Shown: in pieces, positions 13,422 through 53,500 of the stretch
Layout: each line of letters opens with the position of its first letter
Numbering within the stretch: position 1 is the first letter of the stretch
Assembly (NCBI GenBank): GCA_965644265.1
Contig: OZ286462.1
Coordinates: 22,134,001-22,198,000, forward strand
Length of the DNA: 64,000 nt
Direction: 5' to 3'
Origin: Glycera tridactyla
Lineage: Eukaryota
Notes under the pieces: generated by a model
The model's database searches: none
Told to the model about the DNA's origin: nothing
The model's input: only the letters and a program-made list of their open reading frames with translations
Translations under genes and position numbers: made by a program

Positions 13422-13998
13422 GTGAGTTTCAAACATATTTTGATACACAGTTTACATTATCATTGAAAAGACACATAAACTTATGGATTTTTCTATTGAA
13501 GTCCTTCTTGCTCGACTGGAGATAGCATTGGTTGTGAACTCAATCAATTTGCCACTGTACCTACAAGTCAAGGTTTTGGCTTACATAGGATGCACGAAGC
13601 GATGGATTGGTTTCAGCGGCCAGCACCCCCTTCTAGCAACCGCCTCGGCCGCACTCGAGACCGTGAAATGTGATCAGATTCCGCTTTTTCGCCGCTCAAA
13701 TGAACTCACTTTCCCCGCCAAGCGGCTAGCAGCTAGCTTTCATTCCAGGAAACAAATAATTCGTTCAAGTCAATTAGATTTGAAGATTTAAAGCAGAAAC
13801 CAAAATGATCTCAGTTTGAAAAATCTTTTCTTTCATATAGACTGGCTGGTGCCAGTACCTGGAGTCGCAAGATGAAATCAGCAAGAAGTTCTCCTCCCTC
13901 CTGACAATGGCTGGTTTAGTAACTGATCAGCTTGACCTTGGTGTCACTGATAGAGGAACGGCCACACTTATGTGTACATCATTTACCCAAGAACAATA

Positions 13999-14054
13999 AA
14001 CAGCAAATTATCTAGGATGAGACTGAATCATGAGCTGAGACTTTTTCAAAATAT
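13999..14054 (+). repeat. Left terminal inverted repeat
   Basis: aacagcaaattatctaggatgagactgaatcatgagctgagactttttcaaaatat; its reverse complement is at 40002-40057 with one mismatch. Confidence 0.9.
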
Positions 14055-14305
14055 CTACAAAAAAGGAAAGTGCCCATTTTTTGAAGAAATGATTCATTCA
14101 AGAAATGGTCCTCATCAATATGTAGTATTGGATGAAATCCCAGAAGTTGGAGCTATCCCGCTGGTGAATGTGCAAACCCAGAGAGAACAGGATATTTGTC
14201 AATAAGTGAGTCATCATAAACAAACTCTCACCGACTGTCACCATGTGGATTTTTGCCAGTGAACCTGATGCATTCTGCCTGGAAACCAGGAAAATCACTT
14301 GTCAG

Positions 14306-15352
14306 TCTAACATTGTGACATGACACAACCTTAGAAAGCATGCTGCACATTGCTGCACAATGGACCAATTCATGCCAGACTAACCTTGTTCCATGGCACA
14401 ACCTTAGTCACTATGATGCATATTGCCTGGAAAGCCTGGACAGCCACTTGGCAGACTAACCTTGTGCCACAGCACAACCTTAGAAACTATGCTGTACAAG
14501 GGATCATTATCTGCCAGACTAACCTTGTGCCATGGCACAACTTTGGTCAGCATGATGCATATTGCCTGGAGACCTAGACAGCCATTTGCACACTAACCTT
14601 GTGCCATGGCACAACCTTAGAAACTATGATCTACAGGGGATCATCTGCCAGACTAACCTTGTGCCATGGCACAACCTTAGTCAGCAGGATGCAAATTGCC
14701 TGCAGACCTGGACAGCCATTCTGTAGACTAACCTTGTGCCACGGCACAAACTTAGAAACTATGATGTACAGGGGATCATTATTTGCCAGACTAACCTTGT
14801 GCCATGGCACAACCTTAGTCAGCATGGAGACCTAGACAGCCATTTGCACACTAACCTTGTGCCATGGCACAACCTTAGAAACTATGATCTACAGGAATCA
14901 TCTGCCAGACTAATCTTGTGCCATGGCACAACCTTAGTTAGCATGATACATATTGCCTGGAGACCTAGACAGCCATTTGCACACTAACCTTGTGCCATGG
15001 CACAACATTAGAAACTATGATGTACAAGGGATCATTATTTGCCAGACTAACCACGTGCCATGGCACAAACTTAGTCAGGATGATGGACATTGCCTGGAGA
15101 CAGCCACTTGGCAGACTGACCTTGTGCCATGGCACAACCTTAGAAACTATGCTGCGCAAGGGATTATTATTTGCCAGACTAACCTTTTGCCATGGCACAA
15201 CCTTGGTCAGCACGATGCGTATTGCATGTAAACCTAGACAACCACTTGGCAGACTAAGCTTGAACCATTGCACAACCTTAGTTAGACAGTATGCTACACA
15301 TGTACACCTGGACACCTAGACAGCCACTTGGTAGACTAACTTTGTGCCGACT
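14306..15352 (+). repeat. Left subterminal array: about 15 copies of ctaacc-TTGTGCCATGGCACAA-ccttag with alternating spacers
   Basis: 16-bp perfect palindrome core. Period alternates about 60-63 and 70-77 bp between two related spacer types. Confidence 0.95.
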
Positions 15353-15879
15353 AAGTTTATGCATGATGTTTATAGCCTATCAAATTGGACAATCACTTTG
15401 CAGACTGACAATCTATTATTGCATATCTCAGGTATCCCTAGGCTAGAAAATCACTGCCCCTTAACAATGCTACTATGGAATGTGTTTTTTGGCCAAGCCA
15501 TACATGCTACTCCTGAGTCAAACTGTTGAGTTTGAGTGGACAGATTTGGTCTTTGTTAAAGATGGACGTTCACCAGAGCATGATCTAAGTCAATTAAATT
15601 TCATCTTGGCGGAATGATGAACAGTCATTCAAGGTCTGTTTCAATTATCTGTATCATTGGAAAAAGTCACGAAATGATTCTCTGACAATAGTTAGTGATT
15701 TATACTCTCAAGAAATATTGACAAATGATTAGGTGTTCACAATTGAAGGGGGAATAGTATGAAAATCACAGACACTGTGGGTGTCATTTCGTAGTTGGAA
15801 AATTGCTAATTCAGATGCGTTAGAAAGAGTATCATACATTTCACAGACATACATACAAGTTCAAGGCAACTGACTGTTT

Positions 15880-24849: not shown

Positions 24850-27800
24850 TCCGTGCTTGTAGGGATTGCGTGACCGATATCATACTTAAATTTATTTTGA
24901 AGATGCACAAGGTTCTTCCCTAGGTGGACTGGCATCAGAAAAAATTTTTTTCACTTCTGTTCAAGCCAGTGGTCAATGAAAGATCACAAATGTGGCTCTC
25001 AAATCGAAAGAGAGTAGAAAAGTCAAAGGGCACCTACAGGATTTGAACCCAGTACCTTCCATACAGCTAGGGAAAATGATCAACAGCAGCACCCTTACTA
25101 CATCAGCTATCTGTCCCTGTTGGATTTTCCCTGACTAATCTTGTACTCGACTTTATTCTGAATATGCCCCAGGTTCTTCCCGAGGTGGACTGTCATCAGA
25201 AAAACATTTTTCACTTCTGGCATCACAAGAACATTTTGACTTTTGTTCAAGCCTTTTTTGAGAGAAGGATCACGAATGTGACACTCGAATCAGAAAAAAG
25301 TAGGAAAATCATAATAGGCACCAGCAGGATTTGAACCCATCACCTTCCATACAGCTAGAGAAAATAAACAGCAGCAGCACTCTTACTTCATGAGCTATCC
25401 CTGCTTGTAGGTATTGCTTGACCGATATCATACTTAAGTTTATTTTGAATATGCACAAGGTTCTTCCCTAGGTGGACTGGCATCAGAAAAACATTTTCCA
25501 CTTCTGTTCAAACCATTGGTCAATGAAAGATGACAAATTTGGCTCTCAAATCGAAAGAGAGTAAAAAAGTCAATGGGCACCTACAGGATTTGAACCCAGT
25601 ACCTTCCATACAGCTGGGGAAAATGATCAACGGCAGCTCTTACTCCATGCGCTATCTGTCCATATAGCTTTTAGCTTGACTAATATTATACTTGACTTTA
25701 TTTTGAATATGCCCCAGGTTCTTCCCTAGGTGGACTGGCATCAGAAAAACATTTTTCACTTCTGTTCAAACCATTGGTCAATGAAAGATGACAAATGAGG
25801 CTCTCAAATCGAAAGAGAGTAGAAAAGGCAATGGGCACCTGCAGGATTTGAACCCAGTACCTTCCATACAGCTAGGGAAAATGATCAATAGCAGCACTTT
25901 TACAACATCAGCTATCTGTCCCTATTGCAATTTGCTTGACTAATCTTATACTTGACTTTATTCTGAATATGCCCCAGGTTCTTCCCTAGGTGGACTGTCA
26001 TCAGAAAAACATTTTTCACTTCTGTTCAAACCATTGGTCAATGAAAGATCACAAATATGGCTCGTAAATCGATAGAGAGTAGAAAAGGCAATGGGCACCT
26101 ACAGGATTTGAACCCAGTACCTTCCACACAGCTAGGGAAAATGATCAACAGCAGCACCCTTACTACATCAGCTATCTGTCCCTGTTGGATTTTCCCTGAC
26201 TAATCTTGTACTCGACTTTATTCTGAATATGCCCCAGGTTCTTCCCTAGGTGGACTGTCATCAGAAAAACATTTTCCACTTCTGGCATCACAAGAACATT
26301 TTGACTTTTGTTCAAGCCTTTTTTGAGAGAAGGATCACGAATGTGACACTCAAATCAGAAAAAAGTAGGAAAATCATGATAGGCACCAGCAGGATTTGAA
26401 CCCATCACCTTCCATACAGCTAGAGAAAATAAACAGCAGCAGCACTCTTACTTCATGAGCTATCCGTGCTTGTAGGTATTGCTTGACCGATATCATACTT
26501 AACTTTATTTTGAATATGCACAACGTTCTTCCCTAGGTGGACTGGCATCAGAAAAACATTTTCCACTTCTGTTCAAACCATTGGTCAATGAAAGATCACA
26601 AATTTGGCTCTCAAATCGAAAGAGAGTAGAAAAGTCAATGGGCACCTACAGGATTTGAACCCAGTACCTTCCATACAGCTGGGGAAAATGATAAACAGCA
26701 GCGCTCTTACTACATCAGCTATCTGTCCCTATTGGTTTCTGCTTAACTGATCTTATACTTGACTTCATTTTGAATATGCCCAAGGTTCTTCCCTTGGTGG
26801 ACTTTGATCACAAGAACATTTTGACTTTTGTTCAAGCCATTCTTGAGTGAAGGATCACGAATGTGACACTCAAATCAGAAAAAAGTAGGAAAATCATGAT
26901 AGGCACCAGCAGGATTTGAATCCATCACCTTCCATACAGCTAGAGAAAATGAACAACGGCAGCACTCTTACTTCATGAGCTATCCGTGCTTGTAGGTATT
27001 GCTTGACCGATATCATACTTGACTTTATTTTGAATATGCACAAGGTTCTTCCCTAGGTGGACTGGTATCAGAAAAACATTTTCCACTTCTGTTCAAACCA
27101 TTGGTCAATGAAAGATCACAAATGTGGCTCTCAAATCGAAAGAGAGTAGAAAAGTCAATGGGCACCTACAGGATTTGAACCCAGTACCTTCCATACAGCT
27201 GGAGAAAATGATCGATGGCAGCGCTCTTACTCCATGCGCTATCTGTCCATATAGCTTTTAGCTTGACTAATATTATACTCGACTTCATTTTGAATATGCC
27301 CCAGGTGCTTCCCTAGGTGGACTGGCATCAGAAAAACATTTTCCACTTCTGTTCAAACCATTGGTCAATGAACGATCACAAATTTGGCTCTCAAATCGAA
27401 AGAGAGTAGAAAAGTCAATGGGCACCTACAGGATTTGAACCCAGTACCTTCCATACAGCTGGGGAAAATGATCAACGGCAGCGCTCTTACTCCATGCGCT
27501 CTCTGTCCATATAGCTTTCAGCTAGACTAATATTATACTTGACTTTATTTTGAATATGCCCCAGGTTCTTCCATAGGTGGACTGGTATCAGAAAAACATT
27601 TTCCACTTCTGTTCAAACCATTGGTCAATGAAAGATCACAAATTTGGCTCTCAAATCGAAAGAGAGTAGAAAAGTCAATGGGCACCTAAAGGATTTGAAC
27701 CCAGTACCTTCCATACAGCTGGGGAAAATGATCAACCGCAGCGCTCTCACTCCATGCGCTATCTGTCCATATAGCTTTCAGCTTGACTAATATTATACTC

Positions 27801-30800
27801 CCCAGGTTCTTCCCTAGGTGGACTGGCATCAGAAAAACATTTTTTCACTTCTGTTCAAACCATGGTCAATGAAAGATCACAAATGAGGCTCTCAAATCGG
27901 AAGAGAGTTAAAAAGGCAATGGGCACCTCGAGGATTTGAACCCAGTTCCTCCCATCAAGCTAGGGAAAATGACCAACAGCAGCGCTCCTACTCCATCAGC
28001 TATCTGTCCCTATTGGTTTCTGCTCGACTGATCTTATACTTGACTCCATTTTGAATATGCTCAAGGTTCTTCCCGAGGTGGACTGGCATCAAAAGAACAT
28101 TTTTCACTTCTGATCAAACCATTGGTCAATGAAAGATCACAAATGTGGCTCTAAAACCGAAAGGGAGTAGAAAAGTCAATGGGCACCTACAGGATTTGAA
28201 CCCAGTACCTTCCATTCAGCTAGGGAAAAAAAGTGATACCTGCACTCTTACTCCATGAGCTATCTGCCCTCATATTTTTTTGTTTGACTAATATCAGACT
28301 TGACTTTATTCTGGATATGCCCAAGGTTCTTACCCCGGTGAACTGGCATCACAAGAACATTTCGACTTTTGTTCAAGCCTTTTTTGAGAGAAGGATCACG
28401 AATGTGACACTCAAATCAGAAAAAAGTAGGAAAACCATGATAGGCACTAGCAGGATTTGAACCCATCATCTTCCATACAGCTGGAGAAAATAAACAGCAG
28501 CAGCACTCTTACTTCATGAGCTATCTGTGCTTGTAGGTATTGCTTGACCGATATCATACTCAACTTTATTTTGAATATGCACAAGGTTCTTCCCTAGGTG
28601 GACTGGCATCAGAAAAACATTTTCCACTTCTTTTCAAACCATTGGTCAATGAAAGATCACAAATTTGGCTCTCAAATCGAAAGAGAGTAGAAAAGTCAAT
28701 GGGCACCTACAGGATTTGAACCCAGTACCTTCCATACAGCTGGGGAAAATGATAAACAGCAGCGCTCTTACTACATCAGCTATCTGTCCCTATTGGTTTC
28801 AGCTCAACTGATCTTATACTTGACTTCATTTTGAATATGCCCAAGGTTCTTCCCTTGGTGGACTTTGATCACAAGAACATTTTGACTTTTGTTCAAGCCA
28901 TTTTTGAGTGAAAGATCACGAATGTGACACTCAAATCAGAAAAAAGTAGGAAAATTATGATAGGCACCAGCAGGATTTGAACCCATCACCTTCCATACAG
29001 CTAGAGAAAATGAACAACAGCAGCACTCTTACTTCATGAGCTATCTGTGCTTGTAGGTATTGCTTGACCGATATCATACTTAACTTTATTTTGAATATGC
29101 ACAAGGTTCTTCCCTAGGTGGACTGGCATCAGAAAAACATTTTTCACTTCTGTTCAAACCATTGGTCAATGAAAGATGACAAATGAGGCTCTCAAATCGA
29201 AAGAGAGTAGAAAAGGCAATGGGCACCTGCAGGATTTGAACCCAGTACCTTCCATACAGCTAGGGAAAATGATCAATAGCAGCACTCTTACAACATCAGC
29301 TATCTGTCCCTATTGGATTTTGCTTGACTAATATTATACTTGACTTTATTCTGAATATGCCCCAGGTTCTTCCCTAGGTGGACTGTCATCAGAAAAACAT
29401 TTTTCACTTCTGTTCAAACCATTGGTCAATGAAAGATCACAAATATGGCTCGTAAATCGATAGAGAGTAGAAAAGGCAATGGGCACCTGCAGGATTTGAA
29501 CCCAGTACCTTCCATTCAGCTAGGGAAAAAAAGGAATTCCTGCACTCTTACTCCATGAGCTATCTGCCATTATATCATTTTGCTTGACTAATATCAGACT
29601 TGACTTCATTCTGAATATGCCTCAGGTACTTACCATGGTGAATTGGCATCACAGGAACATTTTCACTTTTGTTCAAGCCATTTTTGGGTGAAAGATCACA
29701 AATGTCATGATAGGGACCTGCAGGATTTGAACCCATCACCTCCCATGCAGCTAGGGAAAATAAACAACAAAAGCACTCTCTCAATGAGCTATCTGTCCTT
29801 ATATTTTTTGGCCCGCCTGATATCATACTTTCCTCTATTCTGAATATGCCCCAGGTTCTTCCCTAGGTGGTCCGGCATCAGAAGAACATTTTTCACTTCT
29901 GTTCAAACCATTGGTCAATGAAAGATCACAAATGTGACTCTAAAATCGAAAAAGAGTAGAAAAGGCAATGGGTACCTCGAGGATTTGAACCCAGTTCCTC
30001 CCATACAGCTAGGGAAAATGATCAACAGCAGCGCTCTAACTACATCACCTATCTGTCCCTTTTGGTTTCTGCTTGACTGATTTTATACTTGACTTTATTT
30101 TGAATATGCCCCAGGTTCTTCCCTAGGTGGACTGGCATCAGGAGAATATTTCTCACTTCTGATCAAACCATTGGTCAATGAAAGATCACAAATGTGGCTC
30201 TCAAATCAAAAGAGAGTAGAAAAGGCAATGGGCACCTCGAGGATTTGAACCCAGTACCTTCCATACAGCTAGGGAAAATGATCAACAGCAGCACTATTAC
30301 TCCATCAGCTATCTGCCCTTATATTTGTTGCTTGACTTATATCAGACTTGACTTCATTCTGAATATGCCCCAGGTTCTTCCCTTAGTGAACTGGCATCAG
30401 AAAAACATTTTTCACTTTTGTTCAAGAAATTGTTGAATGAAAGATCACAAATGTAGCTCTCAAATCGAAAGGGAGTAGGAAAGTCAATGGGCACCTACAG
30501 GATTTGAACCCAGTACCTTCCATTCAGCTAGGTAAAAAAAGGAATTCCTGCACTCTTACTCCATGAGCTACCTGTCCTTATACTTTTTGCTTGACTAATA
30601 TCAGACTTGACTCCATTATGAATATGCCCCAGGTTCTTACTTCGGTGAACTGGCATCATAAGAACATTTTCACTTTTGTTCAAGCTATTTCTGAGTGAAA
30701 CATCACAAATAAGGCACTCAAATTAGAAGAAAGTAGGAAAATTATGATAGGCACCTGCAGGATTTGAACCCATCACTTTCCATACAGCTAGGGACAATAA

Positions 30801-31100
30801 TCAAAAGCAGCGCTCTTAATCCATGAGCTATCTGTTCTTATATTTTTTGGCCTGACTGATATCATACTCTACTCTATTCTGAATATGCCCCAGGTTCTTC
30901 CCTAGGTGGTCCGGCATCAGAAGAACATTTTTCACTTTTGTTCAATCCATTGTTCAATGAAAGATCACAAATGTGGCACTCAAATTGGAAGAAATTAGAA
31001 AAATCATGATAGGCACCTGCAGGATTTGAACCCAGGACCTTCCATACAGCTAGGGAAAATAATCAAGAGCAGCGCTCTTACTCCATGAGCTATCTGTCCT
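24850..31100 (-). repeat. Satellite of 24 x about 260 bp, each monomer carrying a tRNA/SINE-like A box and B box
   Basis: 24 copies of caggatttgaa(c/t)cc (reverse complement GGGTTCAAATCCTG, B box) at about 260-bp spacing. Upstream on the minus strand is gatagctcatggagtaagagc (A-box-like). Two monomer subtypes. Confidence 0.95.
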
Positions 31101-31295
31101 CAGGTTGGGCCAGGCTAAAATTCTGACCTTCCATATCTGGTATACACTCGTATAAGCACCTAGTCTGACAATCATTCTGCTTTACAATATCTCGTATATG
31201 CACCTTGTTCTAGGACATGCCAGAGTTAAATGAAAGATTGATATATTATATCAATCAGTTCAATGTCTTCAATATCAATGCAATATGTGTTCCAG

Positions 31296-34200
31296 GCTGA
31301 ACCCAGGATTCGACAAAAGCGCAGGTCTGATGATGAGATCCCAGTAGAGCCGGAGATCCAAGTGAAAAGGATCAGAATGAATCCTGCCGGTGATCTCGAC
31401 ATCACTGCAGATGTCCCTCCTACAGATGAAGATCCGATCAACCCCCGATGGAGCGAAAAGTATATAGGTAACTTGATATCTAACATAGCTCACTTCCCAT
31501 ATTCAAGTTTTCCTATTCATTATGTACAACACTGGAGCTGGATTTCACAATACAATGAACAGTATCCCTTGACCACTGTAATAAGTGTATGGTAAGCATA
31601 CATTCCATGAGTAACAAATTTATTCATTTGTCGACAGTTAGATAAAAAATAATGTCTTTGATAAGCCTGGTGATATAGGATGGAATGCATCTTCAAAATG
31701 AATAAGTAGTGCTTTTACAGTTAAAGACTTTTTTTTGCAGGTAGATACAGAGTTCAAACGAACCAACTGATCCCTCCGCATGAGGAGCTACTGTGCAGAC
31801 CATTGAGGGAGAAATGGGTGAGGGAGATCAAAGAAATGATCGCACAGAGGAATTCTGAGGTTATTACACGGCTACCTGTTATGATCGATGGTACCACTAA
31901 GCAGGAATTCAGATCAGAGGTGGGTGTCATATATTTGGAGGCTATCACCCATCCCTTGAACAAAATTGTGATATACAATTAGAGATTGAGTGCACAAATT
32001 TCAGTCATGCATCTTCAATCAAATTATAAAGAGCTGTATTACGATATTCATTGATGCAATCAAGATGTACGCTGACAATATATTTCCATGTTTTGTTGAA
32101 ACCCACTTTCAACTTTTCTTCTATCCAAGACATTCATAGTGCATCCAAATATTTCATCACCTACAACATTGGTTAACACAATTTTTTTTTCACCGGATTT
32201 AGTCAATGTGACTTCTCTTCTTTTGAAAATGAGCTATTGTTAGAAATTGAGTTATCTGTTATGACCTCACACTTTCAGAACATATCCGTATACAAATTCA
32301 TGACACTGGGGGGCAATCATGTGCGATCAGCCATACATGAGCTCCTTAAAGAAGAGCCACTGAATGAAAAAATCAGGTAAGTTGAGTCAGTAAGGTATGA
32401 ATATCATCGTCTTTGTTGATGTTGTTGCCATTGCCTTGCCCTTGTTATCCTGGAAGTGTAACTGTACACCAGCATTCCTGATTGACAATGAATGACTTTC
32501 CTTTACCCACTTCTATTGAGTGCATCTCCGAAAGTTGCCCCTTGGCTACTCATCTTCTAATGAACAGGTTAAGAATCACATATAGAAGCATCTTCCTGGA
32601 CTTATATCTATGGGACCATTCCCAAAAAATAATTTCATCCTGACCTTATCCAATCTCAAATACATATTATCAACCAGAATGTCATGGGATTTTCATATAG
32701 GAACACTGATATAACTCTCATGATATCCTATTTCAACATTGATCTAGGGCATCAACACTTATCTCAAGTCTGCAATGGGTTGCTCTGATGTTTGAATGGC
32801 TTATTTGTAGAACAATCGAAGTCGATTTATATGTTGGTCTGGACACTGAGGAGGCAATTGAAATTGGCTCCCGCCATAATGCATCCAGCAAATGCTTAGG
32901 CGTGACATTTCAAGTAAGTATGAATGCTCAATATTGTGGATCTTCTATGACCCAATAACTATTCATTCTCATCAAAACGTGATATTTAGACTAAAATGCT
33001 AGGTACGCACAATGACAGTTGATGTTCACATCATCCCAAATAGTTGACACACAATACATCACAAACTCTGTGCTTGATATTCAAAATGTACATCTGGCAT
33101 TTTGCCATCTTCCACCTGAAGACAATCGCCAGATTTTTTTTCAACAATCTCAATCTTATATTCTATTGTTAGCTTTATGTTCACGTGGAACAACAAACCT
33201 GCAGGCTATCCAGTTGCAGCAGACAGATGCTGATTTTTTTGTATAATTTTGTAATGGAAATAGTGTGCCCAATTTTCTTTCGACACACTCTTAAGTTAGA
33301 TTGCATTCGCTTGGACAACTGGGGATCATTCTCTCTGTTGACACCACTCAACAGCCTTCTCTCCGCTTTGTGTTCACACTGCTGTGAAACTATGCCTGCG
33401 GACAACTGTAGCAATTGTCTTGGATTGATTTTCACATCAACATATTCTTTTTTAGGACAAACTATATGTCACAAGGAAGCTGGCCTCTCTGGAGAGTGGA
33501 GAAAGTGCCCGGAAGAGAATTGCAAAGGCGATATCAGACATGGAGTTTCAGGTGGGAATTCCTACTCAATATGTGAAATGTTCAGCCCATGGATTAAACA
33601 AAATCAGTGCTGAAATAGCTGCAGCAAACAGACACTGGTTGAAGGTCATTGAGTTGATACTGTGAGTAAGTGTGTGGGCGGAGGGGGGGGGGGTAGTGTC
33701 TTGAAGCAAACGGATACCTCACATGTGACTTGGGAAAAGGAAAATGATGAATATCATCACAATTCATTCATACATGAGAAATTTTAAGTCACCGTATCTG
33801 AGTGTGATTCAGAGTTGCTGCTTGGTGATGGCTACTGTTCATTTGGTAAGTTTTGAGGGGGAATACCGAACAGATCAACAACGCGACACAATTCCAAGTC
33901 ACATCAGTACCACTCACCTTTGTTGTCTGACTGTCTGCCAGTCGGTTGACTCATATAGCTCAGTACAGAGATTGAACCAGATTTAGAAAATGGACAAAAT
34001 TCTGGTCTGGAGTATCACAAAAAAACCAAGGCTATACCACACTTACTAACAAGGTGATAATCTAATGAAACACAGTAGTATGTGTTGATAGATCATGCTA
34101 CAGAAGATGAAACTACCAACAAAATTGAATTACAGCTGTTAATTTAGCATGATATGGTCAGATATGAATTACAAGTTGTTGAGCTATTAGGTAACCCCAC

Positions 34201-37200
34201 AAATATGAAAAGCTGTTTTGGAGGCATTCAGTGTTTCGATTTGGCGTAGATGGCTCAGTAGAGTATCCCACATATATGCTCAACCCTCACAGAACATGGC
34301 TGGTAATACTTCATTTGGATGGGAAAATATGTTTGTGAGTATGTGTGTGTGCATGTGTGTGTGTGTTTGTGTGTGTATTAGTGGCAAATGGAAGTTGCTT
34401 TAGAACTTGACATAACAAGGCTTGGGAGCTAGTGCAATGTGTGGCACATTGTCATACATATAGGCGGTATATTGGAGAAATTGGTTATGATTGTTTACCT
34501 CCATCATGAAATTCTTCTTAGATAGATTATTTGTCTGTTTCATGCAAAAGGAGGTGAACATGAACTCGATCACAACATTGATGAGTGTCTGCAAGTACTC
34601 AGATGCAGAATGGGAGCTTGTAAGGAAAATAATCTGCAATTTTGAGGCACAAAATGCATTTGGTGCAAGTATACCCCAAAGGGTAAGAGCTTCTTCATCC
34701 TCAGCATCATCCTTATCTCATGATACTTTTTTATCTGACTTGGTCGAATATTAGGGCATGAATATAATGATATACATTTATAAATTGCATCAGACAGGGA
34801 TGAAATGAAACTAGGCATCTATAACAATTATCTGCCAAATGCTATTGTGATTTTTGTCCATTCAGTGAGTCACTTGGCATAAATCTCCAGATAGGTGAGA
34901 TTGTATCGGATTTTCTGACCAGTCATTTCTTTTGAATACATTGATTGAGGGCTTCCAACAAAGAACAAATACCAACATTAGGTTTCAGAAGATGAAACTG
35001 TGATGATAAGCACTGAAGTGAATCCTCTATGAGTGCTCACATCCTACCGGAACATAGATTTGGATCAGAAATCAAGAAGTTCAAAAGCAGCTGATTGCAA
35101 ACTATAGCTGAATCCATATGAATATTGTAGACTGGAGAGATGCCTGGACAGATGCCTACAACTTCTCCTATGTTTGCAGATTTTCAAAGTGATGCAGGGA
35201 ATCTGCACGGACAGTCGGCGCCATTACATGCAGCGAGTCGCCTCAGGAGAGCTCTCACTCCAGGCTGCGATAAAGGTATTTGTGTGATCTCCAAGACTGC
35301 TGCATGTGTCATGGATGATATTACTAGTATAAGATGAAGATAGAATTGCATTAATGGCATCAAATGATAGGAATAATTGCTCTCTCATTGTATCTCCAAT
35401 TATGTTAAAATGGTGACTGTAGCAGTTGCGGCATGCTTCATGAACTTTAGCCTAATGAATCATGAAACTCACAATATTATAGCAAGAATATATGGCTGTG
35501 AAGTAAAAGCGCAATACCAAGCGAGGTGTGAATTTCACCGGATGTCACGAGGACGAAGGTCAAGGGACATCGGGAGAAATTCACACCGAGTTTGGTATTG
35601 CGTTTTCACTTTACAGCCATATAGTCTTGCTTTCATCACATGGATTATGGAAGAAATCGCTCGAAAGCAGTTCTCAGCCAGCTGTGAATACTTATAACCT
35701 GATACTTCCATGTGATAAGTGGTGCCCTCATACATACAGCTTGGTTGGTTCTATAAGAATGATATGTACGATATTGTGGTGCCCTTGCAATGGACATGGG
35801 TGGGATCATTGGGAGCACCTCTCCCAGGATTACAATGGGAGGTAACACGTCATGCAAGGTTCCCAGACTGAAATTATCACAAGTATTATTATCCCCGAGT
35901 GGATGTTCAATTCATGATAACACTTTCACAAATAAACACCTTGCATCAAAACAGCCAGGAACTTCAGATGCGAAAACAGAAGCATAGAATGGTGGATGGT
36001 AGACATATAAGATCTAATAATTGAAGGGAGAAAATATCTGGAAGAAAAAGAATAGATATGAGGCCATTTAGTGTTTTATTGCATAAATCTCCTGCAGTGT
36101 ACAGAATGATTGGTCTCTGTAAATGGACAGTATACAGAGAAGTATATCATCATAACTCATTATGATATGACTATAGTCTCTACAATGAGAACAAAGACAA
36201 ATCCATAAGTACAATAAATAGATAATGCTTGTAATACTCATGTTTGTAGGCATATGTATGATAAGACCTAGTACAGACACTTCAAGTGAAATGCGGATGA
36301 CTATGAATCTCATTGCATCTTTCTTGCAAAACAAACACCATGGCATTATTTTTTCTTGATGTTGTAGGAGATCGAGAGGAGGAAAAAACTTGTACAGCTG
36401 AAATCATTATTTGTGCAGCTGACGAGGGTAAACTCTTGGGAGGAGGCACAGGCTGAATTCCCAAATTTCGCAAGGGACGATAGGCTAGAATCGTTCATGG
36501 GTAATTACAATATGGAATCATCATGCATCAGAAAAGTAGGGCTTAACCGAAGTATTTCCTCCCCCAATCATTCAATCTATCATTCCATGGAAAATATCAT
36601 ACAAAATCTTTGATATGGAAGTATGATCTATGCAGAGATTTGATCTTCCAAAAAAGATTGAATCTTTTTGAATATCCCTACTTGCCTTTCCTTAAAATAA
36701 ATTATTAAATGAATTAAAGTAAGAGACTTATCACTTAAACAGGCACTATGCCAAAACTTTCTGACCGTTCATTCACTGTCCGGTCTCTTAGATGGAGCAG
36801 GATACCTTAATATCAATCCTAGTGTTTGTGAAATGCAATGCACAAAATTCAGATAAAGTCGCACTTGTCCTAAGCAAGACTTGTACTAGGCAAGAACTTG
36901 TGCTAAGCAACATATTTTTGCTCATCCCATCAGAGTATTTTTCACATTAATTGATGTCTACTAAGCATGATCTTGCTCTAAGCACAAAGTATCTTCACAT
37001 CCTGAAGCTTCATGCTTAGGAAAAGTTTGATAGTACATCATCGAATACAATTCCCTGAAATAGCTGAAATAAATCAGTGTTCATTGAATGTTGTCTATCA
37101 GTGGTAGCATACTCTAATGCGATGACCAACATCAGGTCAGTCAATGAATATAAGGGATCCATGATTGATCCAACACAGTCTTTCACCCTGATTTCTTTCA

Positions 37201-37498
37201 CATTGATCATTAAAAGTGAAGTGTTGCCCAAGATGATTCATTATGACTCAATCAATAAAACCCCTCTTTTACAGACATTGGACTGACCCGGGCCACTGTC
37301 CCACAAGCGTTTGTGAATTTTTGCACAGAGGCAGTGAATGGAGTGGAAAGAAGTGTGACGGTCAATGTTGATGTATTGTTGGGTGGCATCCGCTGTGATG
37401 ATGAAAAGATAAAAGAATTCGTCGAGAAGAAGAAAAAAGAAATAACAGAACATGTGGAAAGATATTTGCTTTTGAGAACAAGAACATTCGAGGAATAA
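31296..37498 (+). CDS. ParB/Srx-fold protein, 9 coding exons, 410 aa recovered, start exon uncertain
   Basis: Exons 31296-31467, 31741-31919, 32279-32376, 32811-32913, 33456-33551, 34551-34682, 35180-35275, 36368-36500 and 37275-37498 (1233 nt) all have GT-AG junctions, match in phase and contain no stops. FMTLGGNHVRSAIHELL and LYVGLDTEEAIEIGSRHN parallel ParB YxIIAGERRxRA and VRxLxDEEAxExALxEN. Confidence 0.82.
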
Positions 37499-38450: not shown

Positions 38451-39302
38451 ACACTTTCAGCATGCAAAGATGAGACCTGGGTCACTCAGACCTGGTTTGA
38501 GTGTTCGCTACCTATCCTATTGCTCTATTCTACAGATGCTATCTATCACAATTTTCGAGTGATGGCTCACTCTTGTCATGATAATAAAAGTAAAGCTATC
38601 ATCTCGACTTCTGTTTTCATCCTCTATGATTGTTTCAGAACCGCCTGTTTATCCGATAACAGAAATGACACCTCAAGTGTCTGTGAATTTCATACATTTT
38701 CACCTTTCTTCAGGAACCCAAAAGAGGGAGTCTTGAATGATCCCACCCATACCCATTGCATGGGCATCACAATATACCACAGATGGAGCTGACAGGATGT
38801 TAAACCCCAACAAAACAAACTAAACAATGTTTTCACCTACCATTAATAGCTCAAGATCTTTGCTTAGGCAGTAAGACATCTATATTCATGCCTAAGCTCT
38901 TCAGAGAGATGAAAGAGTTTTCTTTACATTATACATTTTACTGAACATGATCAACACTAGTGTTTTTAGTTATTGGTCATAATTATATATGACATACAAA
39001 TGGAGACTGTACCATGGTACATTTTCAGCCCTTTGAATCCAATGCACTGTGAAAAGGCTTGATCCTATGTTCACTGGATGTTACTAGGGTCAACATTTAA
39101 TGAGAGGAATTACACCTTGAGTATCTGTGGATTCCATACACTCACCTTCCTTGGGAATACAAGGAAAAGGAGAGCTGAATGATCAGTCCCATGCCCATTG
39201 GCTTCATGATATAGCTCACAAGGTGATAATAAACCACAACAAACCAGCATATGATTGATCCACAGCCAGTATTTTCCTAGGCCTTGACTTTGAACAGTAT
39301 GT

Positions 39303-39843
39303 TGACTAACCTTGTGCCATGGCACAAGGTTAGTGAGTGATCAGTTGTGATCTGCAGCATTGTAACTAAGGTTGTGCCATGGCACAAGATTAGTTCACAG
39401 TTTCTTCCCTGGACTCAGCTCTGAACATCTCCAGCATGGTAATATGCACCATAGTGACTAAGGTTGTGCCATGGCACAAGGTTAGTCCACAGTCAGTTTC
39501 CTCCCTGAACAAGCTCTGGACATCATGTTGACTAAGGTTGTGCCATGGCACAAGGTTAGGCAGGGGAAATGTCCATGAAAAATCTGCAGCATAGTAACTA
39601 AGGTTGTGCCATGGCACAAGGTTAGTCAGCAGTTCCCTCCCTGGCCCAAGCCCTGATTATCTGCAACATAGTGACTAAGGTTGTGCCATGGCACAAGGTT
39701 AGGCAGGGATTCATACCTGAAATGATCTGCAGTAGAGTAACTAATGTTGTGCCATGGCACAAGCTTAGTCGACAATTAGTTCCCCAATGGCATAGGCTCT
39801 GTACACAACGCTGATGAAGGTTGTACCATGGCACAAGTTTAGT
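39303..39843 (-). repeat. Right subterminal array: 8 copies of ctaagg-TTGTGCCATGGCACAA-ggttag (inverse of the left array)
   Basis: Flanks are the exact reverse complement of the left-array unit. Spacers ending catcatgttgac and ctgcagcatagtaac match the two left spacer types in reverse. Confidence 0.95.
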
Positions 39844-40001
39844 CTGCAATTTGTCCCTGAAACTCCCTGAAGTGACCAACTAATCATTGCCATTTCTAAC
39901 AGTACAATAATACAAGACAGAAAAACTGACATGAGGTGAGGTATCTCAAAATGATCTATATGACTATTTTCTGGAATAATGTGATGTCCCATTTTTTTCA
40001 A

Positions 40002-40057
40002 ATATTTTGAAAAAGTCTCAGCTCATGATTCAGTCTCATCCCAGATAATTTGCTGTT
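40002..40057 (-). repeat. Right terminal inverted repeat
   Basis: atattttgaaaaagtctcagctcatgattcagtctcatcccagataatttgctgtt, followed by AATA at 40058-40061. Confidence 0.9.
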
Positions 40058-40466
40058 AATAGCATATTGCATGGATATTTACAGCTTCTAGTGAATAAAT
40101 TCAATGTCAAAATACCTCCCCCCCCCCCCAGCTACTGCAGCAAGCAGAATTGAGTGAAAACCATTTCAGATTGGAAATACTTGCTAAACACTCCAGAATA
40201 TTTTTAAAAGAGGGTTTCAACAGATATCTGTCCCTGAATCACTTCTCCACAAAAGCTGCAGGCAAACTATGTTTGGCAATTTTTTGTATTTGAGCCTTTT
40301 ACAGACCAAGCTAATTGGGAAATTCAGAGAGTAATCGACAGACGAACACTCTGTCAGGCGGACCCAATGACAGACAGACAATCAGATAAAGCAGTAGACG
40401 TACAGCGGGACAGCCATATGGACATACATTCATCAGGACAGACAGACAAACTGACTACCAGATATT

Positions 40467-47129: not shown

Positions 47130-48488
47130 GTGAAGGAACACGATGAGCAATATGGACAACTAGTTGGTTGTCTGAACAATATGTCAACGATAATTGATAA
47201 ACATGATACTAAACTAAAAGCATCCGATGTGAGACTCGAAGACTTAGTCGAGAAAATTAGTGAGGAACTGGAGTCAAGGAATACCGGAAATGTGACAAAA
47301 GAATTAATGGAATCCATGGCTGAACTAACTCATACGGTGCAACGAATAGATCAAAAGGTGAATATCCAAGGAGGAAAGGTGGAAAGCATGGAATTACGGG
47401 TGTCGAAAGGAGAGGTCAAGGTGGACTTGCTGGAGAAAAATGATCGGCTTAATACAATCGTAATCGATGGTCTTCCCTTTCAGAAAGAAGCAACACTGAT
47501 CGACCAGGTAATCAAAATCATCAATGACAGAACTGGCTTAGGTGTGTCAAAAAATGAGATCGTGCAGGTGGCAAGATTTGGGCCACCTGGTGGCGACGAT
47601 AAACCACGGCCTGTAAAGGTTCGCTTCATCCATGGTAATGTACGTAGAGATATGTTTATGAAAAAAGTGAACAATAAGAGCTCAAAAATCTTCTTCAGGG
47701 AACAGCTGACAGAAAGGGAATCTGAAATCTTTCAAAAAGCCAAACAAGGTAGAAAGGACGGCAAATTAGACAGTGTCTGGACGAGAGATGGCAGAATTTT
47801 TGCATCCAAAAATAAAAGTCGGGATAAAATTTCAATTTTTTCCATGAAGCGACTTGACGAGGTATTTAAAACAGAAAATCGGCAAGAACAAGAAGAGAAC
47901 CCACGAAATGCACAAGTCCAAACCCATTCTGTTAAGCCAAAATCAACTGGGGACCAATCAAACCATAGAGCAAAACAATCGACATCGATAAGTGCTCCGA
48001 GATTGAACCTGGGTTTTCAACGAAAGTCTACCACAAAGAAAGACAACCCCCCGTCCTCCTTTGTAAAGGAATCGATAAGCTACAGGTCTAAATTGCTAAA
48101 TACAAATCACGACTCAAATGAGACACCAACCACTAAATGTAATGATTCAGAGACAATCAGACACAATGATAAAAATGATAGAAGTGATAGACCTGAAAAA
48201 TCGGTTGTGAGTAATAAGAAAGAAAAAGAGCTTTTCAGGAAATGGCTAAACACATATCGAGAAAAATCTGATGATGAAAGGAGCGAATCCCGCAAATTGG
48301 ACACTGCGACTGGCGGAGGTAGCTGTATATCACTAGTTCTCAGTGAAAACGCGGATCAAGACGAGGGCGCTTACTCTGACCCGTCTAGGTCAATCCCGGC
48401 ACGCAAATCGAATACAAAACAGGAGGCGGCATCATTGGAGCTGTCAAACGCATTTAGCATTTTAGGTCGCATAACAGATAGCTCATAA
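47130..48488 (+). CDS. LINE ORF1p (coiled coil + L1/Tnp22-type RRM-CTD + low-complexity tail)
   Basis: Coiled-coil N-terminus followed by LNTIVIDGL, RPVKVRF, IFFREQLT and SVWTRDGRIF motifs. Frame open from 47112; first AUG is internal. Confidence 0.85.
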   Translation: MKEHDEQYGQLVGCLNNMSTIIDKHDTKLKASDVRLEDLVEKISEELESRNTGNVTKELMESMAELTHTVQRIDQKVNIQGGKVESMELRVSKGEVKVDLLEKNDRLNTIVIDGLPFQKEATLIDQVIKIINDRTGLGVSKNEIVQVARFGPPGGDDKPRPVKVRFIHGNVRRDMFMKKVNNKSSKIFFREQLTERESEIFQKAKQGRKDGKLDSVWTRDGRIFASKNKSRDKISIFSMKRLDEVFKTENRQEQEENPRNAQVQTHSVKPKSTGDQSNHRAKQSTSISAPRLNLGFQRKSTTKKDNPPSSFVKESISYRSKLLNTNHDSNETPTTKCNDSETIRHNDKNDRSDRPEKSVVSNKKEKELFRKWLNTYREKSDDERSESRKLDTATGGGSCISLVLSENADQDEGAYSDPSRSIPARKSNTKQEAASLELSNAFSILGRITDSS

Positions 48489-48780
48489 TGCAGACTCCGT
48501 ATGTCTACAGTGACATAAACTCTCTCGAAAACGAAAAACCAAAGGATACGCAGGTACGTGTATTAAATTAATCAGAAGACGCGAACATTCTTGAATCTAG
48601 TTTCGATGTAAGTCACGCATGACTTGTCATGACCTACTGCCGAGTATTAACCTCATATGACCCCAGCGCTTCAATATAGACCATATTGTATGAATTGTTA
48701 CGATACCTAGATCTGATAGAATTTGATGAATTGATATAATTGTCTTAACTTATGTTAATGGACATCACGTTTGATTACAG

Positions 48781-49698
48781 GATGACTTAGACGAACTCGA
48801 AAAGATAGCGAAAGATAGGATGTTTGCTTCGTTTGGCGAGTTTCGATGCCCGATCTTTCGTACAGAGAAGGCCATGAAAGAGCTGGACCCACCCGTAGTT
48901 CTTGTCATAGGATCCAGCCATGCTAGACGGTCAGGAACCAGTGTTAAATCATTTACCTCACAACCAATAAAGGATCACATGCAGAACTGGCATTTTTTCG
49001 GCATTGGAGGTGCAAATTGGGGTACTTTTGAAAAGGAATTTATTGGCATTTTTGATCGTCTGGAAAGACAGAGAAAGCACGGAAATACCTATGGGAAGAT
49101 AGTGGCTAAGAAAATATCACCTACCCATGTGGTACTACTATTGGGCTCAAACGATGTTGACAATTTTGAGAAACAGCAGCTATGGCGGGCTTGGCACCGT
49201 GATCCCCGTATAGAGAAGCGTAGAACAGATGACATTCAGGGAAACTTTCTCAATGGCCTATATCCTCGTATACATGCATCCATAACACTAATCATGGGAT
49301 TATTCCCCACAGCAACCATCCTTTATCCATCTATTATCTGGAGACCTGATTGGAAGATAGCTACGCGGCAAGTCGCTATTAGCATAGATGGCTATATTCG
49401 TTCAGAATTTAGAATCTCTCATCCAGACACTGTTCGATTTGTCCATACACACATGTTGTATTATAAAATGTATCAAAACGAAGGAAGTTTGGTTGGTTTC
49501 CATAAGAAGACCAAACATGGAAACCGTCGTCGCAGGTATGGTTTCACCATGCCATGCTTTATCGATGATGACAGGATACATCTAAATCAGGCTGGTTATG
49601 AAATACTAGTCACTTGTTTCGTTGGGTCTATCTTGGATCATCACATTGCCACAAAAACTGTCAAACCGAAAACAGTTGTGGTGAATCATTTGAAATAA
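48781..49698 (+). CDS. SGNH/GDSL esterase-like ORF (probable spliced 5' exon 48488-48553)
   Basis: All four SGNH blocks are present: IGSSH, GIGGA, LGSND and DRIHL. Frame open from 48781, directly after the acceptor tttgattacag. Confidence 0.8.
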   Translation, partial: DDLDELEKIAKDRMFASFGEFRCPIFRTEKAMKELDPPVVLVIGSSHARRSGTSVKSFTSQPIKDHMQNWHFFGIGGANWGTFEKEFIGIFDRLERQRKHGNTYGKIVAKKISPTHVVLLLGSNDVDNFEKQQLWRAWHRDPRIEKRRTDDIQGNFLNGLYPRIHASITLIMGLFPTATILYPSIIWRPDWKIATRQVAISIDGYIRSEFRISHPDTVRFVHTHMLYYKMYQNEGSLVGFHKKTKHGNRRRRYGFTMPCFIDDDRIHLNQAGYEILVTCFVGSILDHHIATKTVKPKTVVVNHLK

Positions 49699-50511
49699 CT
49701 GTGACATGTATACCTAATGAATCATTTATTGTTCCAGGAATGTGATGATGCTGTTTGTGTCTGGGGTGCGAAGTGAGATGCACGGTACCGGGTGTACCCC
49801 GGGATGGGTATGTTAACAGTCAGAATTGTAAAGAGCAAATAATATGGGTGGATTTTTTGGGAATTTTTCTTATCAAACACAAAGTTATTAGTGTATAACT
49901 AGTATGAATGTGGCCTTGTGAAATTTAGAACTGTCTGTGTATGAAATAGGAGGTAACAGTTGAGATGTCCTCGCGAACTTGGATACTCCTCTGGCAACCT
50001 CCAGTGATACACAGTGTCGGGTGTAACCTGTGATAGGTATACTATTACTCGGTTGTTTCTGTATTAATAGTGAGAATAACTATAAATTATAGAAATTGCA
50101 ACTGTATAAATGGTTGGAGTATGACTGTGAATAAAAATGACTATACCAGTTGGGATGTCCTCGCGAACTTGGATACTCTTCTGGATGTGCCCATGCTATC
50201 CGAGTCTGGCTCTGACAAAACCATATGAATTCGAACTTGATTTTAAATTGATTTACATCACCTACCTGCTTAAACGCATATAAATGACATTGTCTAATGA
50301 AAGGAAACAAAATCCCTTCTGCTCAACTCTCTCTATTTTGGGAATTGTAAATAGCAACTAACATTCCGGAATATATATCTGCTACGGAACCTATATTACC
50401 TTATTGATTGTATTGTATATTGTGTGTTGCTGACATAGTCGGCTTATCATCATTAACTCATCTCTTCATTTATCATCACTAGACCCTAATTTTGATAACA
50501 ACTCGAATGTA

Positions 50512-53500
50512 TTGACATCATTTCAACCAAGAATCCACCGACTCCCGAGAAACATCCCACGTATCACTCCAGACTCAATAAAAAATGTTAATAATGCGAA
50601 AGATCTGAAACTATTGAATGGAATAAGCATTGGCTATTTAAACATCAGAAGCGTCATTCAGAAATTGTCAGATATCCATCTACTATTAGAGGAGAGTGGG
50701 CTAAATATTCTAATACTAAGTGAAACCTTTTTAAACTACTCTATCTCTAATGAAGAACTGTACATTCCTGGATATAAGCTGGAAAGATACGATCGTGATG
50801 GTGGGAGTGGAATCAGAGGAGGAGGTGGACTCATGGTCTATTACAGGGAAGACCGTATATTGGAATTTATGATCGATTGGTCTCTTAGTAATATAGATTT
50901 AGAATGTCTATGGATGAAATTGCACCTGCCACATACCCGACCAACCTACATTTGTGGTATTTATCGCCCGCCATCGGGAAATGCTAAAAATGCGATAGAA
51001 ATCGTGGAAAACAAAATCATTGACATTAGTAGCATGGGTGCCAATGATTTGGTGATTTTAGGAGATGACAATCTGGATATATCTAAAGGAGGAGCACCAA
51101 AAAAGATGGTAACCGATTTTTGTTCTTCAAATAAATTAAAACAACTTATTGATATGCCAACGAGGGTTACTGATACTAGCAGCACAAACCTGGATCATAT
51201 TTTCGTGTCAAATTCATTGATGTATAGAATGGGGGGAGCAGTAGACCTGGGCTTATCTGACCATGCGCTCATCTTTACAACACGAAAGAAAGCCAGGCAA
51301 TCTCGGAAAAAAACAAGTCTATACCTGAGAAATTTTAAGAAAGCAAACTATGAGATTATAAACGCAGAAATTGAAAATGTAGATTGGTCGGATGTGTTGA
51401 AAGACAACCTATCTTTAGATGATTGCTCAAAAATGGTCTTTGATATTTTGTGTAATATAGTTCATAGAAATATTCCTATAAAAAGGTATACTGTTAGAGA
51501 AGGAGCTCCAGATTGGGTGACAGGGGAATTTCTAGATTTGATCCGAGAGCGGGAAAAAGCGAGCAATACTTTTAGACTAAACCCAACCCCTGAAAATGCA
51601 ACGAAGAAAAAGGATCTGCTGAAACAGACATGCAAACTTAAAACTTCCTTGCAGAAAACTTATTTTGAAAATAGATTGATTGAGGCAAGAAAGGATACGA
51701 AGTCATTATGGAAAACTATTCGGTATTTCTGGAAGGACAATAAGACAGCAACTAGCATTTCAAAGATTAACGATGAAACAAATCCAGAGACTATCTCACA
51801 GATTCTGAACGAACATTTTGCCGCTGTCGGATCAACCCTAGCTAAATCGATACCCGCTTCGAGTACTGACCCCTTGCATGACTTCCCGTATAACCTTACG
51901 AATACCATGTCACTTAAATTGATTGATACTAGCCATGTTATTGATGCCATTGATAGTTTGAATGTATCAAAGTCGGGAAAAGATGATGGTTTACCAGCAA
52001 GGGTGATTTCAAAATGTAAAATCAGCTTGACCCCTATATTTGTCTACTTGTTTAATAGAAGTATTGTAGAAGGAAAATTTCCCAGCATTTGGAAAACAGC
52101 AACGATCATCCCTCTCTATAAGGAAGGCAGTCGAGCTTGTCCTGGTAATTATAGACCGATAAGCTTACTTTCTACAACAAGCAAATTACTAGAGAGGATA
52201 ATACATGACCAATTATATGGATATATAGAGGGCATGGGTCTACTGTGTCAGGAGCAGTCTGGTTTTAGGAGGGGTCGCTCCACTGGCACTTGCCTGCTCG
52301 AGTTCCTAGACAATATATATCAGGATATTGAGCGGGGGAGTGTCACTGGGGCGATCTTTCTGGATCTTAAGAAGGCTTTTGACACGGTGGACCATGCCCT
52401 CTTATTGAGAAAATTATCACGCTATGGTCTTGATACTACTGCCTGTCTATGGATTGAAGATTATCTGCATAACAGATTCTGTGAAACTCGAGTTAATATG
52501 TATACTTCGTCCAAGCTTGGGGTTGAGTGTGGGGTTCCTCAGGGCTCGATCCTGGGGCCACTGCTCTTCAGTATATATATAAATGACCTTCCGAGTTACT
52601 TGAGGAGCCCCACTCTCTATGATAGTTCAACAACTGATTTTTGTGGCAACCGTGAATCTGTAGATGTTAGCATGAGGCTGTCCACGAAACTATACGCGGA
52701 TGATACTGTGATAAGTCTATCCGAAAATGATCCACAGAGATTGGAAGTCAGACTCAATAGTTTAATTATTTCAGTATCACAGTGGCTAAGCATGAACCGA
52801 CTCTCGTTGAATTTAAAAAAGACCTCGTATATGATTTTTGGACAGCCTCATGTGCTGAAAAACTTTCATGCTTTGAATATAAGCTTAAATGATACCCTGC
52901 TATGTCACCCAGAAACGGTTAAGTACCTCGGTATAATATTAGATCCGAATTTGAGTTTTAAGCACCATGTATCGTATATTAGGAGTAAGACGATTGGAAA
53001 GATTGGTGTACTTGGACGTCTACGCCCAGTGATTAACAGAGATGTTTCTTTGATGTTATATAAAACATTAGTATTGCCCCTTTTTGACTATGGGGATATC
53101 ATCTATAACTGCTTAGGCCAGCGTGACTCATTCAAGCTACAGAGATTACAAAACATGGCCTTAAGATTTGTGGACAGGCGCCCACGTAGATATAGCACAA
53201 AGTTACTTCATTCAAATCTAGAGGTACAGTTCTTGCATGATAGACGAAAAGAACATGAGATTCTACATGTTAAGAAAGAACTTTCTGGAAATTTCACCTC
53301 AGCTCCATTATGTGAGTTAGCAGAGTATGATCATTCACATAGTACACGTGCAAGAACACGACCTTATATTACTCAACCAAAAGTGAAGTACAAGTTGAGT
53401 GAGAAAAACTTCCGAATGAGAGCTGCGATCTCATGGAATGATCATATATCTAAATATCCTGAGAGCTATGATCTCGAGATGCAATCGTTTAAAAACTTTA

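Follow-up and report, generated by a model that had tools for sequence, protein, structure and literature searches.

The 64,000-nucleotide stretch of DNA analyzed here (contig OZ286462.1, positions 22,134,001 to 22,198,000 of the forward strand; below, the window) contains at positions 31296-37498 a nine-exon gene situated within a 26,059-bp DNA transposon at 13999-40057. The explanation that we favor, with modest confidence, is that the gene encodes a second, non-transposase protein of this element, which would be ParB-like and would act on the palindromes arrayed inside both ends of the transposon. Little is understood of how very large DNA transposons unite their distant ends or of why extra genes are retained in them; if our reading is correct, a site-specific, dedicated architectural protein that has arrays of its own sites would offer a testable mechanism.

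Structure and conservation of the gene

The first-pass annotation of the window described 410 stop-free codons distributed over nine phase-compatible exons, and this description was reproduced when the model was re-derived from the window letters. Each segment on the plus strand has AG directly before it and GT directly after it, the phases are compatible at all joins, and the spliced length of 1233 nt corresponds to 410 codons plus TAA, with an AATAAA overlapping the stop codon. The proposed order of motifs (LIPP..CRPL, LPVMID, LGGNHVRSA, LDTEEAIEIGSRHN, RIAKAIS..NSITTLMSV, VASGELSL) recurs in that sequence in the rebuilt model, and both basic patches resembling nuclear localization signals (NLS), RQKRR and KRIR, are found in its N-terminus.

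An exhaustive phmmer search with exon 2 against 1.84 billion cluster representatives returned two matches, both of them exon-sized open reading frames (ORFs) from ENA metagenome assemblies, namely P0001 and P0002, the latter a 99-aa homolog uniting exons 2 and 3. Their contigs carry homologs of the whole gene (L001 and L002); that of L001 (ENA ERZ25072999, contig ctg319152) is a eukaryote-like contig of 416 kb unrelated to the window contig. The parts of the window gene, with their matches in these homologs (HSP, high-scoring segment pair; HTH, helix-turn-helix; Srx, sulfiredoxin), are as follows.

31263..31295, plus strand: possible 5' extension of exon 1, MSSISMQYVFQ then AEPR..., with ATGs at 31263 and 31278
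31296..31467, plus strand: exon 1, acidic/basic N-terminus with NLS-like RQKRR...KRIR, not conserved in the homologs
31741..31919, plus strand: exon 2, box I-like LIPP..CRPL, predicted helix WVREIKEMI and strand LPVMID; matches P0001, P0002, L001 and L002
32279..32376, plus strand: exon 3, YKFMTLGGNHVRSAIHELL, box II-like, a DGQHR/Srx-like loop
32811..32913, plus strand: exon 4, predicted strand IEVDLYV and LDTEEAIEIGSRHN (box III-like ..N motif)
33456..33551, plus strand: exon 5, helical, with RKRIAKAIS as putative first HTH helix; first part conserved in L001
34551..34682, plus strand: exon 6, NSITTLMSVCKYSDAEWELV, putative recognition helix region; weak L001 HSP, E 0.87
35180..35275, plus strand: exon 7, contains ...RVASGELSLQAAIK; an L001 ORF crosses joint 7/8
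36368..36500, plus strand: exon 8, helical, with conserved SW..AQ..P
37275..37498, plus strand: exon 9 and stop codon; weak L001 HSP, E 0.004

In a tblastn comparison the spliced protein matched L001 with E-values of 9e-19 (residues 55-135), 3e-12 (264-335) and 3e-5 (138-193) at 37-44% identity, with weaker matches also to exons 6 and 9. The L002 homolog (tblastn E 1e-11) is 46% identical in exon 2 and 61% identical in exon 3; Y, F and TLGGNH of exon 3 are invariant across the three homologs. The L001 gene has an intron pattern unlike that of the window gene, and its unbroken ORFs cross joints 2/3, 3/4, 4/5 and 7/8 (L001 10542-10709 crosses both 3/4 and 4/5, and 15433-15648 crosses 7/8), so that these four splices are independently confirmed. 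Among the joints, outside support is limited to these four; exon 1 and joints 1/2, 5/6, 6/7 and 8/9 stand on the model itself.

Only in those latter parts does the notion of a chance chain of open segments find any room. It is effectively refuted by 410 open codons over nine AG/GT segments, by tblastn E-values reaching 9e-19 and by the four bridged joints, and we give it almost no credence; judged from sequence conservation, the nine exons are an intact, conserved, intron-bearing gene. The last exon of L001 contains an in-frame stop and L002 seemingly has a 1-nt frame problem in the linker, and thus both of these copies are probably decaying, the window copy being intact.

The coding sequence may begin somewhat upstream of the modeled acceptor at 31296. 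The frame of exon 1 is open from 31242 and has in-frame ATGs at 31263 and 31278 (ORF 31263-31595), so that translation could start at either of them, without a further 5' coding exon, and would yield a protein of 416-421 aa. A longer exon 5, with its ORF extending to 33662 and a GTGAGT donor, was ruled out, as it breaks the frame with exon 6.

Further members of the family were sought by a word search with P0002, in which P0002 itself was the sole match, and by family-pattern scans, two metagenome and one viral, which added none, so the family alignment stayed at three rows.

Several observations on the gene and its family may be recorded separately. The exon 5 ORF runs on for 37 codons through 33552-33661 (VGIPTQYVKCSAHGLNKISAEIAAANRHWLKVIELIL) to the GTGAGT donor, and this segment is loosely like exon 6 (a ..W.L...I pattern) and could represent an alternative exon or a duplicate that has degenerated. 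Intron 7 contains a long near-perfect hairpin at 35510-35620 (GTGTGAATTTCACCGGATGTCACGAGGACGAAGGTCAAGGGACATCGGGAGAAATTCACAC), as well as a 49-nt segment (35762-35810) that occurs again, inverted, beyond the gene at 38736-38784 and close to the beginning of the window at 1663-1711, and is probably a small dispersed repeat resembling a miniature inverted-repeat transposable element or a short interspersed nuclear element (SINE). In an ESM Atlas feature search with P0002, rank 2 was taken by a cluster (score 0.94, 188 shared features) whose 76 members are unnamed eukaryotic proteins of 86 aa; the one member of known phylum is from an annelid. This cluster may represent our family in the form of exon-sized ORFs, a hint that invertebrate DNA harbors the family more often than protein databases reveal.

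The transposon and its palindrome arrays

The location of the gene inside a transposon, claimed at first reading, is borne out by what surrounds it: terminal inverted repeats (TIRs), an AATA duplication, a transposase gene of the DUF7869 family and arrays of palindromes. The parts of the element are as follows.

13995..13998: left target-site duplication, AATA
13999..14090: left TIR, 5'-AACAGCAAATTATCT..., a 95-nt repeat with 82% complementarity
14313..15200: left subterminal array, 14 copies of TTGTGCCATGGCACAA at a spacing of 59-76 bp, flanks ACTAACC...CCTTAGT
about 17.4-24.7 kb, minus strand: intron-rich DUF7869 transposase gene, with Pfam matches on two exon ORFs
24868..31100: 260-bp satellite of about 24 units, between the transposase gene and the ParB-like gene
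39312..39836: right subterminal array, 8 copies of TTGTGCCATGGCACAA, flanks ACTAAGG...GGTTAGT, inverted orientation
39966..40057: right TIR, reverse complement of the left terminus, ending at 40057
40058..40061: right target-site duplication, AATA

The transposase was recognized by Pfam search through PF25273 (DUF7869), with E-values of 9e-26 and 5e-14 on two exon ORFs, and it is oriented divergently from the ParB-like gene on the opposite strand. We take DUF7869 to be a Sola-like transposase; a target-site duplication of 4 bp is reportedly the rule for Sola elements. The element thus combines PF25273 matches, inverted repeats and a 4-bp duplication (AATA).

The sequence TTGTGCCATGGCACAA is a perfect 16-bp palindrome present in 22 copies (14 and 8, with at most two mismatches) where 0.04 would be expected by chance, and at the same threshold the 64-kb window has none outside the two arrays. 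The spacing over both arrays is 59-92 bp, and each site is embedded in a 30-bp quasi-palindrome. The flanks are asymmetric, reading ACTAACC...CCTTAGT in the left array and ACTAAGG...GGTTAGT in the right one, and thereby indicate that the two arrays are in inverted orientation; the arrays lie 0.2-1.2 kb internal to the TIRs. The palindrome is absent from the TIR termini. The transposon therefore encodes two proteins and carries cis elements of two kinds, the TIRs at its termini and the palindrome arrays further in, which suggests separate sites for the two proteins, the 22 palindromes being the candidate cognate sites for the product of the ParB-like gene.

The 6-kb satellite at 24868-31100 consists of 260-bp units with some double units of 520-547 bp. 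Each unit includes a 91-nt segment on the minus strand resembling a tRNA or SINE head (T-arm GGTTCAAATCC), and ARAGORN found no intact tRNA in the satellite.

A second element with the same gene family

In 45 kb of the L001 contig, stitched from 37.6 to 82.5 kb, the homolog at 54.2-60.5 kb is flanked by inverted arms of 1.7 kb that are 97% identical (50338-51994 and 72957-71284), and these arms bear arrays of another palindrome, GCTTAAAGAnnnTCTTTAAGC. Thus the protein family and palindrome arrays appear to travel together in TIR-type elements, with a palindrome that differs between the window element (TTGTGCCATGGCACAA) and the L001 element (GCTTAAAGAnnnTCTTTAAGC). The same 45 kb shows no DUF7869 similarity near the homolog, and two retroelements have inserted within the stretch. 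A gene of the host, single-copy and in conserved synteny, was the contrary case envisaged in the first-pass annotation; it is contradicted by this second family member in a different TIR-bounded element, and the conclusion supported is that of an accessory gene of a DNA transposon.

Whether such an accessory gene plays any part in transposition is a further matter. Giant DNA transposons frequently contain captured genes (PMC12477816), and the gene has eukaryotic introns, both of which suit a captured host gene or fragment carried as a passenger without a role in transposition. We find this account very improbable, as a divergent homolog with different introns again lies between inverted arms with palindrome arrays in another genome, and exon 2, among the 1.84 billion representatives, matched the two exon-sized fragments and no annotated cellular protein.

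At least three more copies of the L001 arm occur at 74.5-76.2, 76.8-78.5 and 80.6-82.4 kb of the contig, each with GCTTAAAGAnnnTCTTTAAGC arrays; these clustered copies look like a family of non-autonomous derivatives.

Possible relationship to the ParB superfamily

We consider it fairly probable that residues about 58-195 form a highly divergent ParB/Srx-type fold, closer to phage 'DGQHR' proteins than to chromosomal ParB, and that a helical HTH-like region follows. The comparison was made through phage proteins carrying the IDGQHR motif, of which 101 were collected by DNA pattern; the canonical profile was built from 39 diverse chromosomal ParBs collected likewise by the pattern AGERRxRA. A word search with KorB had given no proteins other than KorBs of 72% identity or more, too uniform a set for a diverse profile, and DNA-pattern scans (AGERRxRA, IDGQHR, IDGHHR) were used instead. 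The IDGQHR phage proteins have weak Pfam matches to GmrSD_N (PF03235) and DUF6551 (PF20188), and by profile comparison with canonical ParB (hhalign probability 94.5%, P 8e-8) they clearly group with the ParB superfamily.

When the N-terminal 150 aa of the window family were compared with the IDGQHR set by hhalign, the register predicted from the motifs was obtained: the Arg of CRP matches the box I Arg, WVREIKEMI coincides with helix 1 and LPVMID with the strand after it, LGGNH is paired with IDGQH, and IEVDLY...EIGSRHN covers the subsequent strand and the ..N motif of the IDGQHR family. The P-value was 0.0026 when residues 56-205 were used and 0.012 with the entire protein, and none of 150 column shuffles scored as high. 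Against an N-domain profile that pooled 183 sequences from the IDGQHR, IDGHHR and canonical ParB sets, the family gave an hhalign probability of 55% and P 1.2e-4 over 89 aligned columns; one of 250 shuffles scored as high, which corresponds to an empirical P of about 0.004. The window sequence alone reached P 1.6e-4 with this profile.

A similar picture emerged from ESM Atlas feature searches with three non-overlapping pieces of the family. Among the few named families returned were DUF3723, DUF6551 and ParB_N for P0002, DUF6551 and DndB/DGQHR for the L001 ORF covering exons 4 and 5, and DUF3801 and HTH_ParB (0.87) for the L001 ORF covering exons 7 and 8. As all scores fall between 0.87 and 0.91, each match is a lead only; that ParB-clan families would be returned repeatedly and in the right N-to-C order by chance seems unlikely.

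Other results weigh on the opposite side. Searches of Pfam, PHROG, NCBIfam and PADLOC, run piecewise with all exons, P0002 and the L001 exon-4+5 ORF and not with the whole spliced protein, gave no match at E up to 10, and PDB sequence searches of the pieces returned nothing. With the canonical ParB hidden Markov model (HMM) the spliced protein reached a score of -1 bit, and hhalign comparison of the canonical profile with the three-row family gave P 0.35-0.44; a family HMM run against 168 ParB-superfamily proteins had a best E-value of 0.25. Profile comparison with single DGQHR subfamilies was not significant, the IDGHHR phage family aligned in the expected register with P 0.08-0.13, and the HTH region with the 'G.LS' helix aligned with canonical ParB in the expected order with P 0.21. 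Taken alone against the pooled profile, L001 gave P 0.04 and L002 gave P 0.19. AlphaFold2, applied to P0002 with a five-row family alignment, produced no usable model (predicted local distance difference test score, pLDDT, 37). In the window protein (GGNHVR) and in L001 (GGNHTR) the box II Arg lies one residue out of place, and L002 (GGNHIQ) lacks it. No Walker A or deviant Walker A motif (the P-loop of ParA-like proteins) was found in any frame of 13999-40057. Finally, the family is known from three members, two of which look decayed. Matches of T1-like phages to P0002 (tblastn, 85% of the query) were discarded as chance, because they are antisense to a real gene.

The ParB-like character proposed at first reading is accordingly supported in part and not established: the N-domain register against the pooled and IDGQHR profiles and, as leads, the Atlas matches suggest it, and the curated libraries, the canonical profile and the box II Arg speak against it. 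The particular remark that V occupies the place of the key Arg of GxxR is correct in the ungapped register and incomplete in that the Arg comes one residue later (GGNHVR). On balance the protein is probably, if not yet provably, a very divergent ParB relative. Membership in the canonical ParB class is not shown: the GxxR Arg and a ParA partner were both looked for, and neither was found. With the box II Arg shifted or missing, nucleotide binding may be altered or lost, and the same displacement argues against assuming canonical CTP (cytidine triphosphate) chemistry.

The failure of all curated-library and PDB searches of the pieces and of the canonical profile, a best profile-profile signal of only about P 0.004 by shuffling with an hhalign probability of 55%, and the key Arg out of register are what would be expected if the accessory protein had some other fold and the motif parallels were coincidental, the arrays then being sites of the DUF7869 transposase, as in CACTA, hAT and Mutator elements. 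We regard this as unlikely. An alignment in a pre-specified register over 89 columns, and the recall of ParB-clan families by three independent pieces among about 25,000 Pfam families, speak for the ParB relationship. Even if the ParB fold were refuted, the gene would represent a new and conserved family of accessory proteins carried by DUF7869 elements.

Possible mechanism

According to the scheme that we propose, the accessory protein would enter the nucleus by means of its basic N-terminus and bind the 16-bp palindromes as a dimer, 14 at one end of the element and 8 at the other. It would then coat or bridge the two subterminal regions and so promote the pairing of ends across 26 kb by the transposase, whose own recognition sequence would be the distinct terminal 60-95 bp; alternatively, the accessory protein could regulate the element or retain the excised DNA. 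The assignment of the palindromes to this protein is suggested by the fit of a dimeric HTH protein to a 16-bp perfect palindrome. The scheme is tentative, and we put it slightly short of an even chance.

Its main competitor as to the arrays is the transposase itself, since in other superfamilies arrays of subterminal repeats are as a rule bound by the transposase, and this counts against our assignment. The L001 element is at odds with that alternative, in that the accessory gene and the arrays persist together there with no transposase within 45 kb; so are the palindrome-free TIR termini of the window element, with their two kinds of cis site for two proteins.

The protein might also be an enzyme, that is, a ParB/Srx-domain nuclease or an NTP-dependent enzyme (NTP, nucleoside triphosphate) acting on transposon DNA, for example by nicking or processing the ends, and not an architectural or clamp-type binder. 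Among ParB-like domains several carry a nuclease annotation, and GmrSD_N has NTPase activity; the nearest detectable relatives of the window protein are phage DGQHR/GmrSD_N/DUF6551-like proteins and not partition ParBs, and one scanned phage IDGQHR protein (L126) also matches HNH endonuclease models. In the family itself the phosphate-binding loop is degenerate (GGNHVR, GGNHTR, GGNHIQ), no metal-binding or nuclease motif was seen, and the remainder of the protein is helical and HTH-like. An enzymatic role therefore seems improbable to us.

A more far-reaching version of the binding scheme, which we consider possible and rather doubtful, is that an animal-type giant transposon runs a ParB/parS-style module without ParA. 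A stand-alone nuclear protein would load onto sopC-like arrays and pair or condense the ends or tether the excised element, protein and sites would co-evolve, and non-autonomous derivatives would keep both and lose the transposase. If this were true, the link between ParB-like proteins and giant transposons, noticed so far in algae and for enzyme fusions, would come to include an animal-type genome, a stand-alone form that binds DNA, and an element family whose protein and palindrome seem to vary in concert. The pair of protein and site would then constitute a compact orthogonal DNA-tethering module.

Comparison with known systems

ParB-domain accessory genes of giant transposons have already been published for algae (2025); what is new here is the animal-type genome and the stand-alone form, neither of which, for ParB-like transposon accessory genes, was found reported in our literature search. 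In Ectocarpus, the 21.5-kb element Sola1-1_Ec32 carries a ParB plus DNA methyltransferase gene on the strand opposite to the transposase (PMC12477816). In red-algal Plavaka elements, PAG3, which combines ParB with a 2OG-oxygenase, lies beside tandem inverted-repeat arrays (bioRxiv 10.1101/2025.02.11.637652), and ParB-HTH fusions with Dam methylase had been noted before these in chlorophytes and chytrids (PMC4738411). The algal proteins were compared by published description. On this basis the window gene resembles them as the second gene of a cut-and-paste element of more than 20 kb; it shares with Sola1-1_Ec32 an orientation opposite to the transposase, and with Plavaka PAG3 the tandem arrays of inverted repeats within the element. 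In contrast to the algal fusions, domain search found no methyltransferase or oxygenase domain in any exon, so that the protein stands alone at 410-421 aa; its C-terminal half is helical, Pfam ParB_N detects none of its pieces, and the genome has animal-type repeats.

The phage IDGQHR proteins, relatives of DndB, are arranged like the window protein (box I Arg, then helix, strand, D/G-G-Q/N-H loop, a further strand and the ..N motif) and give the best profile-profile match, a marginal one (P about 1e-2 to 1e-4). They differ in that the Arg after His is shifted by one in the window protein, and in that the phage proteins have neither introns nor an NLS.

The window protein runs parallel to canonical ParB, Spo0J, KorB and SopB in its motif order (N-domain motifs, a putative HTH-like segment and a 'G.LS' helix), and the differences lie in the replacement of GERRxR by GGNHVR, the lack of a ParA partner and the residence in a eukaryotic transposon instead of a replicon. 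The candidate sites, 16-bp perfect palindromes in tandem arrays, recall sopC and clustered parS: in sopC of the F plasmid a 43-bp repeat occurs 12 times in tandem, and each copy contains a 16-bp inverted repeat to which SopB, a ParB-family protein, binds.

Sulfiredoxin is a eukaryotic enzyme of the ParB/Srx fold with the signature F-G-G-C-H-R-Y-A, and by eye the window motif Y-x-F-x-x-L-G-G-N-H-(V)-R-x-A resembles it. Unlike Srx, the window protein has no catalytic Cys, is much longer, has a helical, DNA-binding-like C-terminal half and is borne by a transposable element.

Other features of the window

A long interspersed nuclear element (LINE) at 47130-53529 has three ORFs: a coiled-coil ORF1, a GDSL-esterase-like ORF with weak Pfam matches, and an ORF of 1005 aa. 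The last is ORF2 by the apurinic endonuclease (APE) and reverse transcriptase (RT) Pfam domains of its homologs, and its nearest database relatives are 38% identical. The named relatives of this ORF2 are only from sea cucumber, fluke and insect, at 25-28% identity; the LINEs of the host are of animal type.

A Cys-rich ORF of 118-146 aa is present in three copies (3167-3607, 13118-13525 and 60915-61271) whose DNA is 73-87% identical. It has a signal-peptide-like start (..QIHQCTQQSC..CAICPGCISNS..), and one copy ends about 470 bp before the left end of the transposon.

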